Assembly: GCA_002269645.1 (NCBI GenBank)
Contig: NIVC01004199.1
Coordinates: 1 to 55,705 of the forward strand
Direction: 5' to 3'
Length of the DNA: 55,705 nt
From: Macrostomum lignano
Taxonomy: Eukaryota
Positions 9,256 to 36,056 of this stretch are shown here, in pieces. The translations under genes and the position numbers were made by a program. Below the pieces are notes generated by a model. It ran no database searches. It had not been told where the DNA came from and saw only the letters and a list, made by a program, of their open reading frames with translations. Position 1 is the first letter of the stretch; each line of letters begins with the position of its first letter.

Positions 9256-12200
9256 TCACAGGTGAGTGCATACATCTAGTGCCATAGGAACGTGATTAGC
9301 AACTTCTGGTTGACGTTGATTCGGTGAAGCAGACTTTCTCGAAAGCAGCCGATGCAGCTTGTCTACTACTAATTGGATTTTATCTTCGTCTTGAGTCTCC
9401 ATGACGATGCGGCGTTCATCTTTAATTGCCTGAATCTGCTGCAGGCAAAACCACAGGTGGTCCGGGCAGTTGCTGTATTGAGCCGTGGTGAGCAGCTCTT
9501 CCAAGTCCGGGTCTTCTTGCAGCTCTTCGAGCCACGCGTCGAAGTTAATTGAAGCGTCAGTTTCGAGTAACTCAGCTTGCAGACTCCAACTCAGGCAGTT
9601 GAAGTTCACGTAGACATGGGCGGAGCGGGGCTGCGACAGTCTGGCTGTGAACAGAGTCTGAGTGAACTCGGGAAGAAACGGGAAGCGAGGCTGGGTGTCG
9701 CATGGGAAGCAGAACCTCCACGCCCAGTCGAATTTGAGTTGTGGAAACTCCTCCGGATTTAATATTTCAGCCGGTTTCCAGCCCCTTTTCACTGTCACAT
9801 TTCGGAGTGCAGTGACGTCACTCAAGGCGAGCATTGGTTCCCCAAACTTCAAGTGCATCATGATCTTGATGCACACATAGGCACATTTGCACCAAACTAA
9901 GTTAATAGACTCAAGCAACCTGGTCAGTGCCTCTTTGCTAGCTGATTGTTTTTGCAGCTCAAACAGACAGTCGTCAATAACTGCGTATGCGGCAAAGAGC
10001 CGCTGGTGTCGCTCCGGAGCAGGTCCTAGAGCCTTTTGAGTAGCAATCGACTCTGTTTGCAGCAGAGTGAACGGGTGAAAGTAGAAATTTGGTGACTGCA
10101 AAGGCTTCACGAGTTGACGAAGTTGCGTTACAACGCCGCTGAAGTCTTGCCTCAGCAGAGCCAGCTGGTGCCGAACTCTCGCCTTCGTGTTGTCGAATTC
10201 GCCGCCAAGTCCGGCGTTTTTGAAGTAAAGCGGAGCGTCAGCCATAAAAAAGTGCGGCATGCACACGTGCGGTGAGTCGCTGGAGTCGATGAAGCTCAGC
10301 ATCATGTCGAGAGATTCTCTAAGCAGTATTACCAGATGCTCGGGTTTCCAGAGTTGTGTTATGCTATCAAAATAAGCGTGCTTCTTAAGCATGAAAAAGA
10401 GTAACGTCTTTGCGTGATACGTCTTGAGTCCTGGCGTTGACATATTGATTGGTAAGTATTTTTTAAAGATGAACTTGATCATGGTGAATAGCTGGCCCTG
10501 AACTGTGCTCAAATTTCTCATTATCTGTCGTTCATGGAAGCTAAAGCTCACCCTGAGCTCATTGCTTGAGTCTGGCCTCGTTGCACTCACAAGGTGAACG
10601 GGTGTTAGAAAATATTTGGGCAGAATATGTATCCTGTACTTGAAGTAGCCGCTGCAGCACTGAATAGCCCTACAGGTGTCCTGGGTAGGTCGTACACCGC
10701 AGGCTGGGGCAGTCATTGCAGGCTGGCTGCCTGAAAACAGCAGTAAGTAAGTAAGTAAGTAAGCAAGTAAGTAAGTAAGTAAGTAAGTAAGTAAGTAAGT
10801 AAGTAAGTAAGCAAGCAAGTAAGTAAGTAAGTAAGTAAGTAAGTAAGTAAGTAAGTAAGTAAGTAAGTAAGCAAGTAAGCAAGTAAGCAAGTAAGCAAGT
10901 AAGTAAGTAAGTAAGTAAGTAAGTAAGTAAGTAAGTAAGTAAGCAAGCAAGTAAGTAAGTAAGTAAGCAAGTAAGTAAGTAAGTAAGTAAGTAAGTAAGT
11001 AAGTAAGTAAGTAAGTAAGCAAGTAAGTAAGTAAGTAAGTAAGTAAGTAAGTAAGTAAGTAAGTAAGTAAGTAAGTAAGTAAGTAAGTAAGTAAGTAAGT
11101 AAGTAAGTAAGTAAGTAAGTAAGTAAGTAAGTAAGTAAGTAAGTAAGTAAGTAAGTAAGTAAGTAAGTAAGTAAGTAAGCAAGCAAGTAAGTAAGCAAGT
11201 AAGTAAGTAAGTAAGTAAGTAAGCAAGCAAGTAAGTAAGTAAGTAAGCAAGTAAGTAAGTAAGTAAGTAAGTAAGTAAGTAAGTAAGTAAGTAAGTAAGT
11301 AAGTAAGCAAGTAAGCAAGTAAGTAAGTAAGTAAGTAAGTAAGTAAGTAAGTAAGTAAGCAAGCAAGTAAGTAAGTAAGTAAGCAAGTAAGTAAGTAAGT
11401 AAGTAAGTAAGTAAGTAAGTAAGCAAGTAAGTAAGTAAGTAAGTAAGCAAGTAAGTAAGTAAGTAAGTAAGTAAGTAAGTAAGTAAGTAAGTAAGTAAGT
11501 AAGTAAGTAAGTAAGCAAGTAAGTAAGTAAGTAAGTAAGTAAGTAAGTAAGTAAGTAAGTAAGTAAGTAAGTAAGTAAGTAAGTAAGTAAGTAAGTAAGT
11601 AAGTAAGTAAGTAAGTGAGTAAGTAAGTAATTTTTTATTAACGTTTACCTGACCCCACGTCAACCTGCGCATGGCCTTCATTGACCGCCAGCAGTCTGGC
11701 ATGTCTGCAAGCAGTGGAATTAACGCAGGCGCCTTTCAGGTGAAAAGTTTGTCCCGGAACCAAGACAGTCCAGTCGATGTCGGAGTCAGCCCCTGTCCTG
11801 CCGTTCACCTGTACCAGACTGTTGGCCCAGCCCTCAGCGAAGCTGCCAGTCATCTGTCTGTCCTCTTGTGTCAGCGCTCGACTACCTTCCTCCAGGAGGT
11901 CCGCCAATCGTTGCTGGCACACTGCTCTGTGCTGAGTGAATCCAGCCTCACAGAGCAGTCGATGCAGCTCCTTGCTTATCTTCCGTGGCCGCTCACTGGG
12001 AATGCAGTTGAGGTTAAAAACTTAGTGTAGCAGGGAAAACACCATTACGGATTGACCAGCTCTGATGATGTTTAAGTAACAGATTTTTTCTGTTATTCCT
12101 GGAACTTACTGTTTAAGCTCGCCTCCAGCAGTTGCTCCGTCTGTACTGTCTTCCTCCATTACTGCTGTTTCACTCAGCAGCTCGAGCACGATGGGTGGAT

Positions 12201-13413
12201 TATTGTCGGCAGCCAGCTGCTTGCACGTCAGGCCCCGATGGTCCCGGTGACAGATTTCTGCGCCTCCGTCTGTCAGAGCCTTGGCAGCTCTCACGTGGCC
12301 TGCTTCACAAGCCCGGGACAAAGCCGTCCGACCTTGACGATCCTCAGCTCGCACCGACGCGCCGATTTCCAACAGCTGCTCAATGAGCTCATGGTGGCCT
12401 GCGTCTGCTGCCAGCATGAGAACTGTGGCTCCCGTGCCGTCAGGCAGATCGATCGCATTCTCTTTTATGTAGAGGCGATTTTTATTGATGAGCGTCTGGG
12501 CCAGCGAGACATGGCCATGGTTGACTGACAGACGGAGCAGCTGGAACATCTGAGCTGGCTGCATCTGAGCCAGGGTGGCCATCAATATTGTGTTGTCATC
12601 TGAGATGGTCAGATGCGAGAGGGCGTCCAGCAGCGAAGAGTCGTGGGCCAGCCAGTGCGCCGGGATGCCGGGATTTGGATCGGCGATTTGAAAAATGGAC
12701 GACTTCGCTGCCAACTGGAGACAAGCGCGCAGCATGAGCAGGTTCATGGCTCTGGCGGCGGCTTCAGCAGCTTGCATGCAGCACCGATCTCTGAGTTGGG
12801 GGCTGCCGATGGCCTGAATGAGGAACTGAGCTGTCGCCCAGCTTGACCAGCTGCTGTCAGCCGTTGCAGACTCTGCCGCTTTAACACATAGAGCATCCTT
12901 ATTGGCTTGGGAGCTGATGTTCAGCACGAGAAATCTTACTACACTCCAGTTCCTTTCCCGTCTAGCGGCGGGCGCGGCCATAATGCAGCACAGGTCTCGG
13001 AGCTCCCTATTGGGAACCAGCTGCACCAGAAATCTGACCACGCCCCAGTCGCGGGCATTGGAGGCAGTTCCCGCTGCTTTGGCGCAGCAGTTTTTCAGCA
13101 AATTTCTGTCAGAAATGGAATTCAAGTAGAAAACGACCGCTTCCTGGTTTTGGCTGTTAATGGCGAACTCTAAATTTCTCGAGCCGAACAGGTCCCTGCG
13201 CCTCTGGTCAGGAATGTACTGAAGCAGAACTTCCACTGCTGCCATTTTACCCCGCCTCGAAGCAGACTCTGCGGCCAGTAGGCAGCTCTGCTGTCTGAAA
13301 TTCTCGTCCGAAATCTGTTCGACCAGCTCGCGGACCCTCTGCAATTTGCCTCTGATGGCCGCGTGCAGCAGCCTCTGCGCTGATGCTGCCAGCTTCGAGT
13401 CCGCATTGCCCAT
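9256..13413 (-). CDS. Ankyrin-repeat / Mab-21 (cGAS-like receptor, cGLR) fusion protein, ~1041 aa; join(13413..12110, 11995..11649, 10730..9256)
   Basis: Exon 1: ~35-aa helical repeats, then canonical ANK repeats (GATVLMLAADAGH, GRTALSRACEAGH), ending CA|gtaagt (phase 2). Exon 2 follows cccag|T and carries the nucleotidyltransferase motifs TGSFAEG...DSDID, ending G|gtaaac (phase 1). Exon 3 follows ttttcag|GC and carries the Mab-21 motifs LRVSFSxHE...GQLFTMIK...GLKTYHAKTLLF. Total 3126 nt with an open frame throughout. Confidence 0.88.
10743..11630. repeat. (GTAA)n tetranucleotide microsatellite (~890 bp, GCAA variants) filling intron 2 of the ANK-cGLR gene
   Basis: Direct reading. It is the source of the spurious LTYL ORFs. 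Confidence 0.98.
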
Positions 13414-35400: not shown

Positions 35401-36056
35401 TGCCGTGGCGACTGCAGCTCGCGATCTCGAGAGTCGCTCACAGAGCTGACTGCCCGACTGCCAGACTGCGCCCGCTCAGCACGGGAGGCTCTCAGAGCGC
35501 TGGCCTGCCTGAAGTTTCGCGACCGGAAAGCTGCGGAGAGAATCGTGAGTCAGTGCAGAGGCCACTCGGTGAGCAGAGGCATCGCCTGGTCTGCTGAGAG
35601 GTCGGCGACTGTTGCTTGTGTTTGGCGGCATCTGATGACGGGCCAAGACTGCGCGTGGAAATTCTGCTTTGAGTTTCAGGAGAGGCCGAAACTGTCATTG
35701 CCAGGTCAGAATTTTTGTCCCACTGCTTTCCGAAAGAGCTAGACAATAATCAGTTTTGTGTCTACATTAATTTTGACGCATTGCTGTGGGCCCTGCGTCT
35801 CGAATGGCAAACAGAGAGCGAACTGAGCGCCCAGGCGTGGATCCGGGATGTGGCCCAGCGGGCTGATGCGGACGAGCAGGAGCTGCTGGTAGCTGATGCG
35901 TTTTGCACCCAAGTGGAGCAGGTTTTCAGCATTCGCAAAAAGCTGCGAGGTCTCAAAGACAGCAATTTTCAAGACTTAAAAGACCAGACGCTTCGCGGAC
36001 AAGAAGGGACTCTTCAGCTGCCAAACTGTGAAACGATTGAGATACTTATTGCATAA
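32484..36056 (+). CDS. Transmembrane-ankyrin / Mab-21 (cGLR) fusion protein, ~1048 aa if one frameshift is corrected; join(32484..33811, 34174..34517, 34583..36056)
   Basis: Exon 1: hydrophobic helix FFTVFIIIYALAALLVLPGLLI, a polybasic stretch, 10 ANK repeats, then AA|gtacga (phase 2). Exon 2 follows ttttag|A and carries VGSFSEG...SDID, ending G|gtaagt (phase 1). Exon 3 follows tttcag|CT and carries LRVSTSxLE...GQLFVTLK...GLKPYHVKTITF. Intron positions and phases match the paralog at 9256-13413. A 1-nt deficit in the T5 run at 35712-35716 shifts the last ~113 codons. Confidence 0.82.

Follow-up and report, generated by a model that had tools for sequence, protein, structure and literature searches.

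Two three-exon genes in a Macrostomum lignano contig

The DNA analyzed here, hereafter called the window, is a 55,705-nt stretch from the flatworm Macrostomum lignano, in which two loci of interest were located at 9256-13413 on the minus strand and at 32484-36056 on the plus strand. In the list of open reading frames (ORFs), ankyrin (ANK) and Mab-21-like sequences appeared at these loci as separate fragments on both strands, amid minisatellites and microsatellites, and an earlier note on this DNA had joined them into two genes. Here, models of these two genes, gene A and gene B, were obtained by reading the sequence and splicing it in silico. We consider, with a probability of about 0.75, that genes A and B are two paralogues, belonging to different subfamilies, of a M. 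lignano-specific expansion of ANK-fused cGAS-like receptors (cGLRs), an architecture that has been catalogued earlier. The two loci and their relation were as follows.

9256..13413, minus strand: gene A, an intact ANK-cGLR gene of three exons encoding 1041 aa (stop-free spliced ORF, GT-AG sites, 98% identity to the GenBank model P0001 described below)
32484..36056, plus strand: gene B, which represents a second ANK-cGLR subfamily and has a disrupted frame as assembled (in-silico splicing; 30% identity to gene A in the core and C-terminal region taken together)

In gene A, the exons at 13413-12110, 11995-11649 and 10730-9256 were joined into an unbroken ORF of 1041 aa with the following features, all on the minus strand.

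12110..13413, minus strand: exon 1, with anchor motif and ANK arrays (Pfam, pattern match); start codon at 13413-13411
13393-13413, minus strand: MGNADSK, an N-myristoylation-type motif (PROSITE-type pattern)
Within exon 1, minus strand: degenerate ANK-like repeats of ~34 aa, about residues 1-290 (weak Ank_2 match, E = 0.0011, residues 1-219)
12241-12531, minus strand: three canonical ANK repeats, residues 295-391 (Pfam Ank_2, E = 1e-17)
11996..12109, minus strand: intron 1, phase 2, 114 nt, GTAAGT...CAG (splicing)
11649..11995, minus strand: exon 2, N-lobe of the nucleotidyltransferase (NTase) (motif positions, family alignment)
11842-11847, minus strand: G485-S486 (GS column invariant in the family)
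11773-11787, minus strand: D505/D507/D509 of DSDID (SDxD column invariant in the family)
10731..11648, minus strand: intron 2, phase 1, 918 nt, GTAAAC/CAG (splicing), nearly all of it an (AGTA)n microsatellite at 10742-11630
9256..10730, minus strand: exon 3, with the third Asp, the Mab-21 C-lobe (LRVSFSF, LKTYHAKT) and a family-specific C-terminal domain (alignment, profile matches to the cGLR1/cGAS C-lobe)
10678-10680, minus strand: third catalytic Asp, D568 (core D134 falls in the column of the third Asp, which is invariant in canonical cGLRs)
About 9316-10020, minus strand: C-terminal domain, residues ~788-1022 (pLDDT 87 in the AF2 model; no PDB or Pfam match)
9256-9258, minus strand: stop codon (spliced ORF)

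Gene A is intact. Its C-terminal 607 aa are 98% identical to the GenBank model BOX15_Mlig014288g1 (P0001), in which both junctions fall exactly as in gene A (...GGELK-H-ERPRK... and ...VDVGS-G-SQPA...). A second copy of gene A (L001) was found on contig NIVC01001020.1 of assembly GCA_002269645.1, with 96-97% nucleotide identity and with the same head-to-head Na/Ca exchanger neighbour as in the window; the coding sequences of the two copies differ at 20 synonymous and 18 non-synonymous codons. The L001 copy carries a GAG to TAG nonsense change at codon 318 in the ANK exon (L001 about 9956-9958), whereas the copy in the window is intact, and it is because of this nonsense codon that the public P0001 model begins at a downstream Met.

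The exons of gene B on the plus strand were placed at 32484-33811, 34174-34517 and from 34583 onward, bounded by GT-AG sites, and the ATG is preceded by an in-frame TAA at a distance of 12 nt. Its features were as follows.

32484..33811, plus strand: exon 1, with N-terminal hydrophobic helix, polybasic stretch and ~10 ANK repeats (hydropathy, Pfam)
32502-32567, plus strand: hydrophobic helix, residues 7-28 (Kyte-Doolittle hydropathy of 2.85 over residues 10-28)
Roughly 32766-33773, plus strand: ~10 ANK repeats (Pfam Ank, E = 2.5e-61, 10 matched stretches)
33812..34173, plus strand: intron 1, phase 2, GTACGA...TTTTAG (splicing)
34174..34517, plus strand: exon 2, NTase N-lobe (splicing, family alignment)
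34331-34336, plus strand: G496-S497 (GS column invariant in the family)
34397-34405, plus strand: D518/D520 (SDxD column invariant in the family)
34518..34582, plus strand: intron 2, phase 1, 65 nt, GTAAGT...TTTCAG (splicing)
34583..36056, plus strand: exon 3, with third Asp, Mab-21 C-lobe and C-terminal domain (splicing, family alignment)
34633-34635, plus strand: third Asp, D575 (family alignment)
35400-36053, plus strand: C-terminal domain (family-specific domain)
35712..35742, plus strand: frame break, a T5 run at 35712-35716 that is one base short, followed by an in-frame TAG at 35740-35742 (three-frame translation, paralogues)

As assembled, the three-exon model of gene B ends at this TAG and yields 943 aa, and the final 113 conserved codons (35715-36056) are shifted to another frame. 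Addition of one base to the T5 run resulted in a protein of 1048 aa that is colinear with its paralogues, in which the frame is continuous across this region, including the conserved CFP motif. Rescue by a 32-nt GT...AG 'intron' at 35705-35736 was also considered and rejected: it would be implausibly short and would remove the CFP motif, which lies ahead of the putative acceptor and is read in the downstream frame. The two three-exon proteins of ~1040 aa described in the earlier note were thus recovered for gene A (1041 aa), and for gene B as far as its splice sites and phases are concerned, but not for the frame of gene B, whose break the earlier note does not mention. Gene B represents either a homopolymer assembly error or a very young pseudogene, and it is intact only if the single-base deficit is an assembly error. 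That it is a recently inactivated pseudogene and not a functional receptor is well conceivable: the break does lead to a stop, no annotated database protein corresponds to it (none was found at 90% identity or above, the best match being 66%), and birth-and-death turnover occurs in the family, as exemplified by codon 318 in the second copy of gene A. On the other hand, the frame break is the sole defect of gene B, the 113 codons past it are open and keep the family motifs (YINFDALLWALRLE, WIRDVA..D.DEQELL), and a one-base homopolymer deficit is a typical error of long-read assembly.

The intron phases of genes A and B are alike (phase 2, then phase 1), with intron 2 at the identical alignment column and intron 1 within 2 residues. 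The alternative that ANK ORFs and Mab-21 ORFs belong to different genes lying side by side, joined artefactually by our splicing, could appeal to retention of intron 1, which would stop both ANK exons soon after (in gene B at 33852-33854), making ANK-only products conceivable. Such an arrangement is nevertheless highly improbable, given that the NTase exons themselves do not contain a plausible start, that intron positions and phases are common to two genes with only 30% identity, that the independent P0001 model has identical junctions, and that Ank and Mab-21_C are combined in more than 40 paralogous models. The joining proposed in the earlier note therefore stands, and the ANK and NTase/Mab-21 parts are single genes, each predicted from its sequence to encode one polypeptide.

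Catalytic motifs and predicted fold of the cores

The motifs on which the earlier note had relied were found in both proteins (gene A: GSFAEGW...DSDID, LRVSFSF and LKTYHAKT; gene B: GSFSEGW...QSDID, LRVSTSF and LKPYHVKT). A family profile was built from 15 trimmed family cores and compared with the PDB, where it matched cGLR1 (8gjy, E = 4.8e-9), many cGAS entries (E ~3e-8) and MAB21L1 (E = 1.7e-3). When the family was compared by hhalign with canonical cGLRs of corals and molluscs (sequences of Table S3 in Li et al.), the probability was 99.3% and the E value 2.5e-20 over 293 columns, and the GS, SDxD and RPxxD columns of the family superposed on the canonical GS, [DE]h[DE] (DEFD) and third-Asp columns. 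At the catalytic positions, gene A has G485/S486, D507/D509 and D568, and gene B has G496/S497, D518/D520 and D575. Across paralogues with overall identities of 26-60%, the GS and SDxD columns do not vary and conservation of the third Asp is 90% or more. The third Asp aligns with the invariant D of canonical 'SVDLVPA' and lies in a predicted beta strand. Replacement of this Asp by the H of 'YRIHIL' was considered as well and discarded, as the alignment instead puts the Asp at RPxxD.

For comparison of folds, an AF2 (AlphaFold) model was made of P0001, which is 98% identical to gene A, from a 36-sequence family alignment (mean predicted local distance difference test score, pLDDT, 84.6; predicted template-modelling score, pTM, 0.78). 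In the Foldseek search of this model against the PDB, cGAS was ranked first (E = 3.4e-7, target-normalised TM-score 0.50-0.56, ~350-390 aligned columns), followed by MAB21L1 (E = 6e-6), MB21D2 and MiD51 (E = 5e-5); over the top matches cGAS, MAB21L1 and MB21D2, E values ranged from 3e-7 to 1e-5 and target-normalised TM-scores from 0.46 to 0.56. The AlphaFold/Foldseek check suggested in the earlier note thus gave a predicted bilobal cGAS/Mab-21 NTase fold. The defining sequence and fold features of cGLRs are present in the alignments and in the model, and genes A and B are genuine predicted cGLRs.

In common with vertebrate cGAS and animal cGLR1 (4k9b, 8gjy), the family shows the bilobal Mab-21/NTase fold, the GS/[DE]h[DE]/h[DE]h triad and a conserved C-lobe with RxSFS- and YHxKT-type motifs. 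It differs from them in that identity is only 11-16%, the segment from DxD to the third Asp is shorter, and an N-terminal ANK array with an anchor and a C-terminal domain of ~230 aa are added. Between the DxD strand and the third-Asp strand there is an invariant His/Cys/Cys/His set (H520, C525, C531 and H543 in gene A, 11671-11742, minus strand; H531, C536, C538 and H551 in gene B), which may form a zinc (metal) site and is placed elsewhere than the Zn thumb of cGAS.

The presence of MAB21L1 and MiD51 among the Foldseek matches raises the alternative that these proteins are non-catalytic Mab-21-fold scaffolds or nucleotide-binding membrane adaptors. MiD49 and MiD51 share the Mab-21-like NTase fold and are tethered by an N-terminal transmembrane helix, as predicted for gene B; the MiD proteins have neither the catalytic triad nor the ANK repeats nor the C-terminal domain. 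In the family of genes A and B, the triad is present and conserved: GS, SDxD and the third Asp are invariant or near-invariant across paralogues whose identity is otherwise only 26-35%, and they match the canonical cGLR catalytic columns. MAB21L1/2 likewise have the same fold, but MAB21L1 lacks this triad, and no functional active site is predicted for the MAB21L proteins (Li et al. 2023, PMC9980059). A canonical Mab-21 protein, PAA76228 (pfam03281, E = 4e-91), exists separately in M. lignano. Although no activity has been reported for the paralogues that were screened, as described below, a non-catalytic role is quite improbable.

Predicted anchors, repeat arrays and spread of the family

The earlier note had assigned different membrane anchors to the two proteins, and both predictions agreed with the sequences: MGNADSK of gene A fits the N-myristoylation pattern, and in gene B the strongly hydrophobic residues 7-28, a putative transmembrane anchor, are followed by a polybasic stretch. 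The N-myristoylation pattern also fits two paralogues, P0009 (MGQNQSR) and P0037 (MGQYLSC), and one paralogue has a transmembrane helix at the C-terminus rather than the N-terminus. Among A-type paralogues, identity is lowest in the distal repeat array (27-34%); the proximal ANK repeats reach 54-63%, the NTase core 62-70% and the C-terminal region 52-57%.

The conserved domain of ~230 aa that follows the Mab-21 C-lobe was predicted with a pLDDT of 87 and a pTM of 0.84. It matched no Pfam family and gave no significant fold match in the PDB (best Foldseek E = 0.28, to TPR/PPR-like helical hairpins). A limited literature search found no description of cGLR membrane anchors or of this domain; neither these two features nor the extent of the expansion seem to have been described before.

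At least 50 clusters at 50% identity in a library of 1.84 billion representatives matched the cGLR part of the profile, and in a source lookup of ten such clusters 10/10 were from M. lignano. The profile used in this search included ANK columns, and its top 150 matches were mixed with giant ankyrin proteins; because of these columns, distant relatives without ANK repeats were buried. A clean-core profile, used in a word-indexed search, retrieved a single fragment from a JGI metagenome and a single canonical Mab-21 protein (ENA assembly, E = 4e-11) besides proteins of M. lignano, and nothing else. Full-length relatives whose source was looked up were all from M. lignano, as were the other named database relatives of gene A. 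The sole member not attributed to this species is a metagenome fragment (L002) on a 3.2-kb contig of JGI metagenome 3300040801, an exon-3-like piece of 467 aa with an identity to gene A of 48%, rising to 61% where the core aligns best locally, which suggests that related macrostomid flatworms in environmental samples carry the family. The ANK-cGLR family is a lineage-specific expansion.

One further model, P0002 (UniProt A0A1I8..., 1036 aa), has an A-type C-terminus joined to a B-type NTase start; the genome may contain an A-type and a B-type gene side by side at another place, or P0002 may be a misannotated chimera.

Precedent, possible function and other features of the window

The earlier note had put the architecture forward as a candidate new one, to be refuted by literature that already described the family. 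Such literature exists, because Li et al. have listed and cloned members of it: some cGLRs are fused to ankyrin or TPR modules (Fig 1C/S2A; Li et al. 2023, bioRxiv 10.1101/2023.02.22.529553 / PMC9980059), six M. lignano proteins with Ank_2 are given in their Table S2 (PAA67649, PAA58690, PAA68676, PAA86972, PAA45980 and PAA68216), and five M. lignano family members were cloned as truncated constructs (Table S3, #89-93; Li et al. 2023, PMC9980059). The claim of novelty therefore does not hold, and genes A and B are new members of a catalogued ANK-cGLR family. Their likeness to the published set (PAA68676.1, PAA93208.1, PAA86972.1, PAA45980.1 and PAA57558.1) extends to the organism, the family, the order of ANK followed by cGLR and an identical catalytic motif, GS[FY]AEGW...SDID...RPxxD. 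Two of the constructs #89-93 are close relatives of gene A with the same GSYAEGWANSLVQVNGRTAADSDID motif, and PAA68676 (P0009), among the cloned proteins, has 58% identity to gene A when the core and the C-terminal region are compared together and 68% when the comparison is limited to the core. Genes A and B differ from this set in that neither is among the published constructs; gene A has been annotated only as a truncated hypothetical protein, from the nonsense copy, and gene B has not been annotated. Furthermore, anchors and the C-terminal domain are not discussed in the text of Li et al., where 'transmembrane' is used only for STING.

Several observations weigh against the assignment of genes A and B to a cGLR expansion of membrane-anchored enzymes. 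In the HMMER comparison proposed in the earlier note, Ank was strong in both proteins, but Pfam PF03281 (Mab-21) matched neither of them, and PF20266 (Mab-21_C), though listed in the precomputed Pfam matches of many paralogues, reached only 19.5 and 21.2 bits in the two proteins, below the cut-off of 24.1. When the gene A core was compared with the PDB as a single sequence by phmmer, nothing relevant was found; cGAS was detectable only by the family profile and by fold comparison. Gene B as assembled stops at 943 aa. Both the myristoylation and the transmembrane anchor are predicted from motifs only, and most annotated paralogues have neither anchor motif, though many of these models are N-terminally incomplete. 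The M. lignano proteins #89-93 are not among the 15 characterised active enzymes, in a screen that used truncated cores and only dsDNA (ISD45) and poly I:C as ligands (Li et al. 2023, PMC9980059). Among flatworms, the planarian Schmidtea has been reported to be without cGAS and STING (PMC13563047). Four entries for parasitic flatworms in Table S5 likewise give 0 cGLR and 0 STING (Li et al. 2023, PMC9980059).

If genes A and B are ANK-fused cGLRs as we propose, the proteins would sit on the cytosolic face of a membrane, gene A by N-myristoylation and gene B by a signal-anchor transmembrane helix, for which the positive-inside rule would put ANK and NTase in the cytosol. The fast-diverging N-terminal repeat array could then act as a module for recognition of ligands or partners, or as an autoinhibitory module, and the activated NTase would make a nucleotide second messenger, most likely a cyclic dinucleotide, to be read by a receptor. 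As to the ligand, the earlier note had suggested that the proteins may respond to protein or membrane cues rather than to free nucleic acid. The basic cores argue for nucleic acid, and the negative bare-core screen and the hypervariable array argue for repeat-based recognition. The isoelectric points (pI) of the NTase cores are 9.2 for gene A and 8.5 for gene B, in the range tied to dsDNA/dsRNA-sensing cGLRs (Li et al. 2023, bioRxiv 10.1101/2023.02.22.529553 / PMC9980059), and the nearest folds are DNA-bound cGAS structures. Direct sensing of nucleic acids, in which the basic core would bind dsRNA or dsDNA while the ANK repeats and the anchor position or restrain the enzyme, is accordingly imaginable but somewhat unlikely, since the truncated cores of five family members, to which ISD45 dsDNA and poly I:C were offered, do not figure in the set of 15 active enzymes, the Zn-thumb position of cGAS is not conserved, and the strongly diversifying N-terminal array suggests that recognition occurs there. 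A more far-reaching version, in which membrane-tethered sensors see ligands other than nucleic acid, namely proteins, through the hypervariable arrays, use the C-terminal domain as a new output or oligomerisation module and signal without canonical STING, seems to us unlikely.

If this more far-reaching version were true, it would add a new branch to nucleotide-second-messenger immunity, and would do so in a phylum that is otherwise considered to have lost the cGLR-STING pathway. With M. lignano being a transgenic and RNAi-tractable model that has at least 50 ANK-cGLR clusters, apparently catalytically competent, this family is well suited to studies of what is sensed by non-canonical cGLRs and of what responds to their signal. 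The value of the window is one of annotation: it supplies gene A in intact, full-length form, gene B, hitherto unannotated and with a frame problem, predicted anchors and a C-terminal domain.

Besides genes A and B, the following features were found in the window.

19154-28513, plus strand: Na/Ca (NCKX-type) exchanger gene between genes A and B (Pfam Na_Ca_ex), with matching exons at 19154-19492, 26840-27124 and 28190-28513 and introns packed with minisatellites
1573-1716 and 3553-3675, minus strand: zf-PARP (PARP/DNA-ligase-type zinc finger) exon fragments (E = 9e-4 and 2e-6)
36540-36947, minus strand: ORF with a YIGKT...R..EH motif resembling the GIY-YIG nuclease of Penelope-like retroelements; no Pfam match
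39453-40142, minus strand: 229-aa ORF with a WSC (carbohydrate-binding) domain (Pfam E = 9e-11)
41256-55705: 14.4-kb array of a 23-bp satellite at the end of the window, ~642 copies, AT-skewed, 31% GC

The two zf-PARP fragments are separated by a 28-bp minisatellite at 1828-3534 and probably belong to a PARP1- or Lig3-like gene that runs off the window. Apart from the terminal satellite, repeat arrays occupy 1828-3534, 14729-15894 and 19703-21951, and one 28-bp minisatellite (GCAACTGAGGATCTGGGAGGCTGGCCCA) occurs at three places in the window, where it yields long spurious ORFs.

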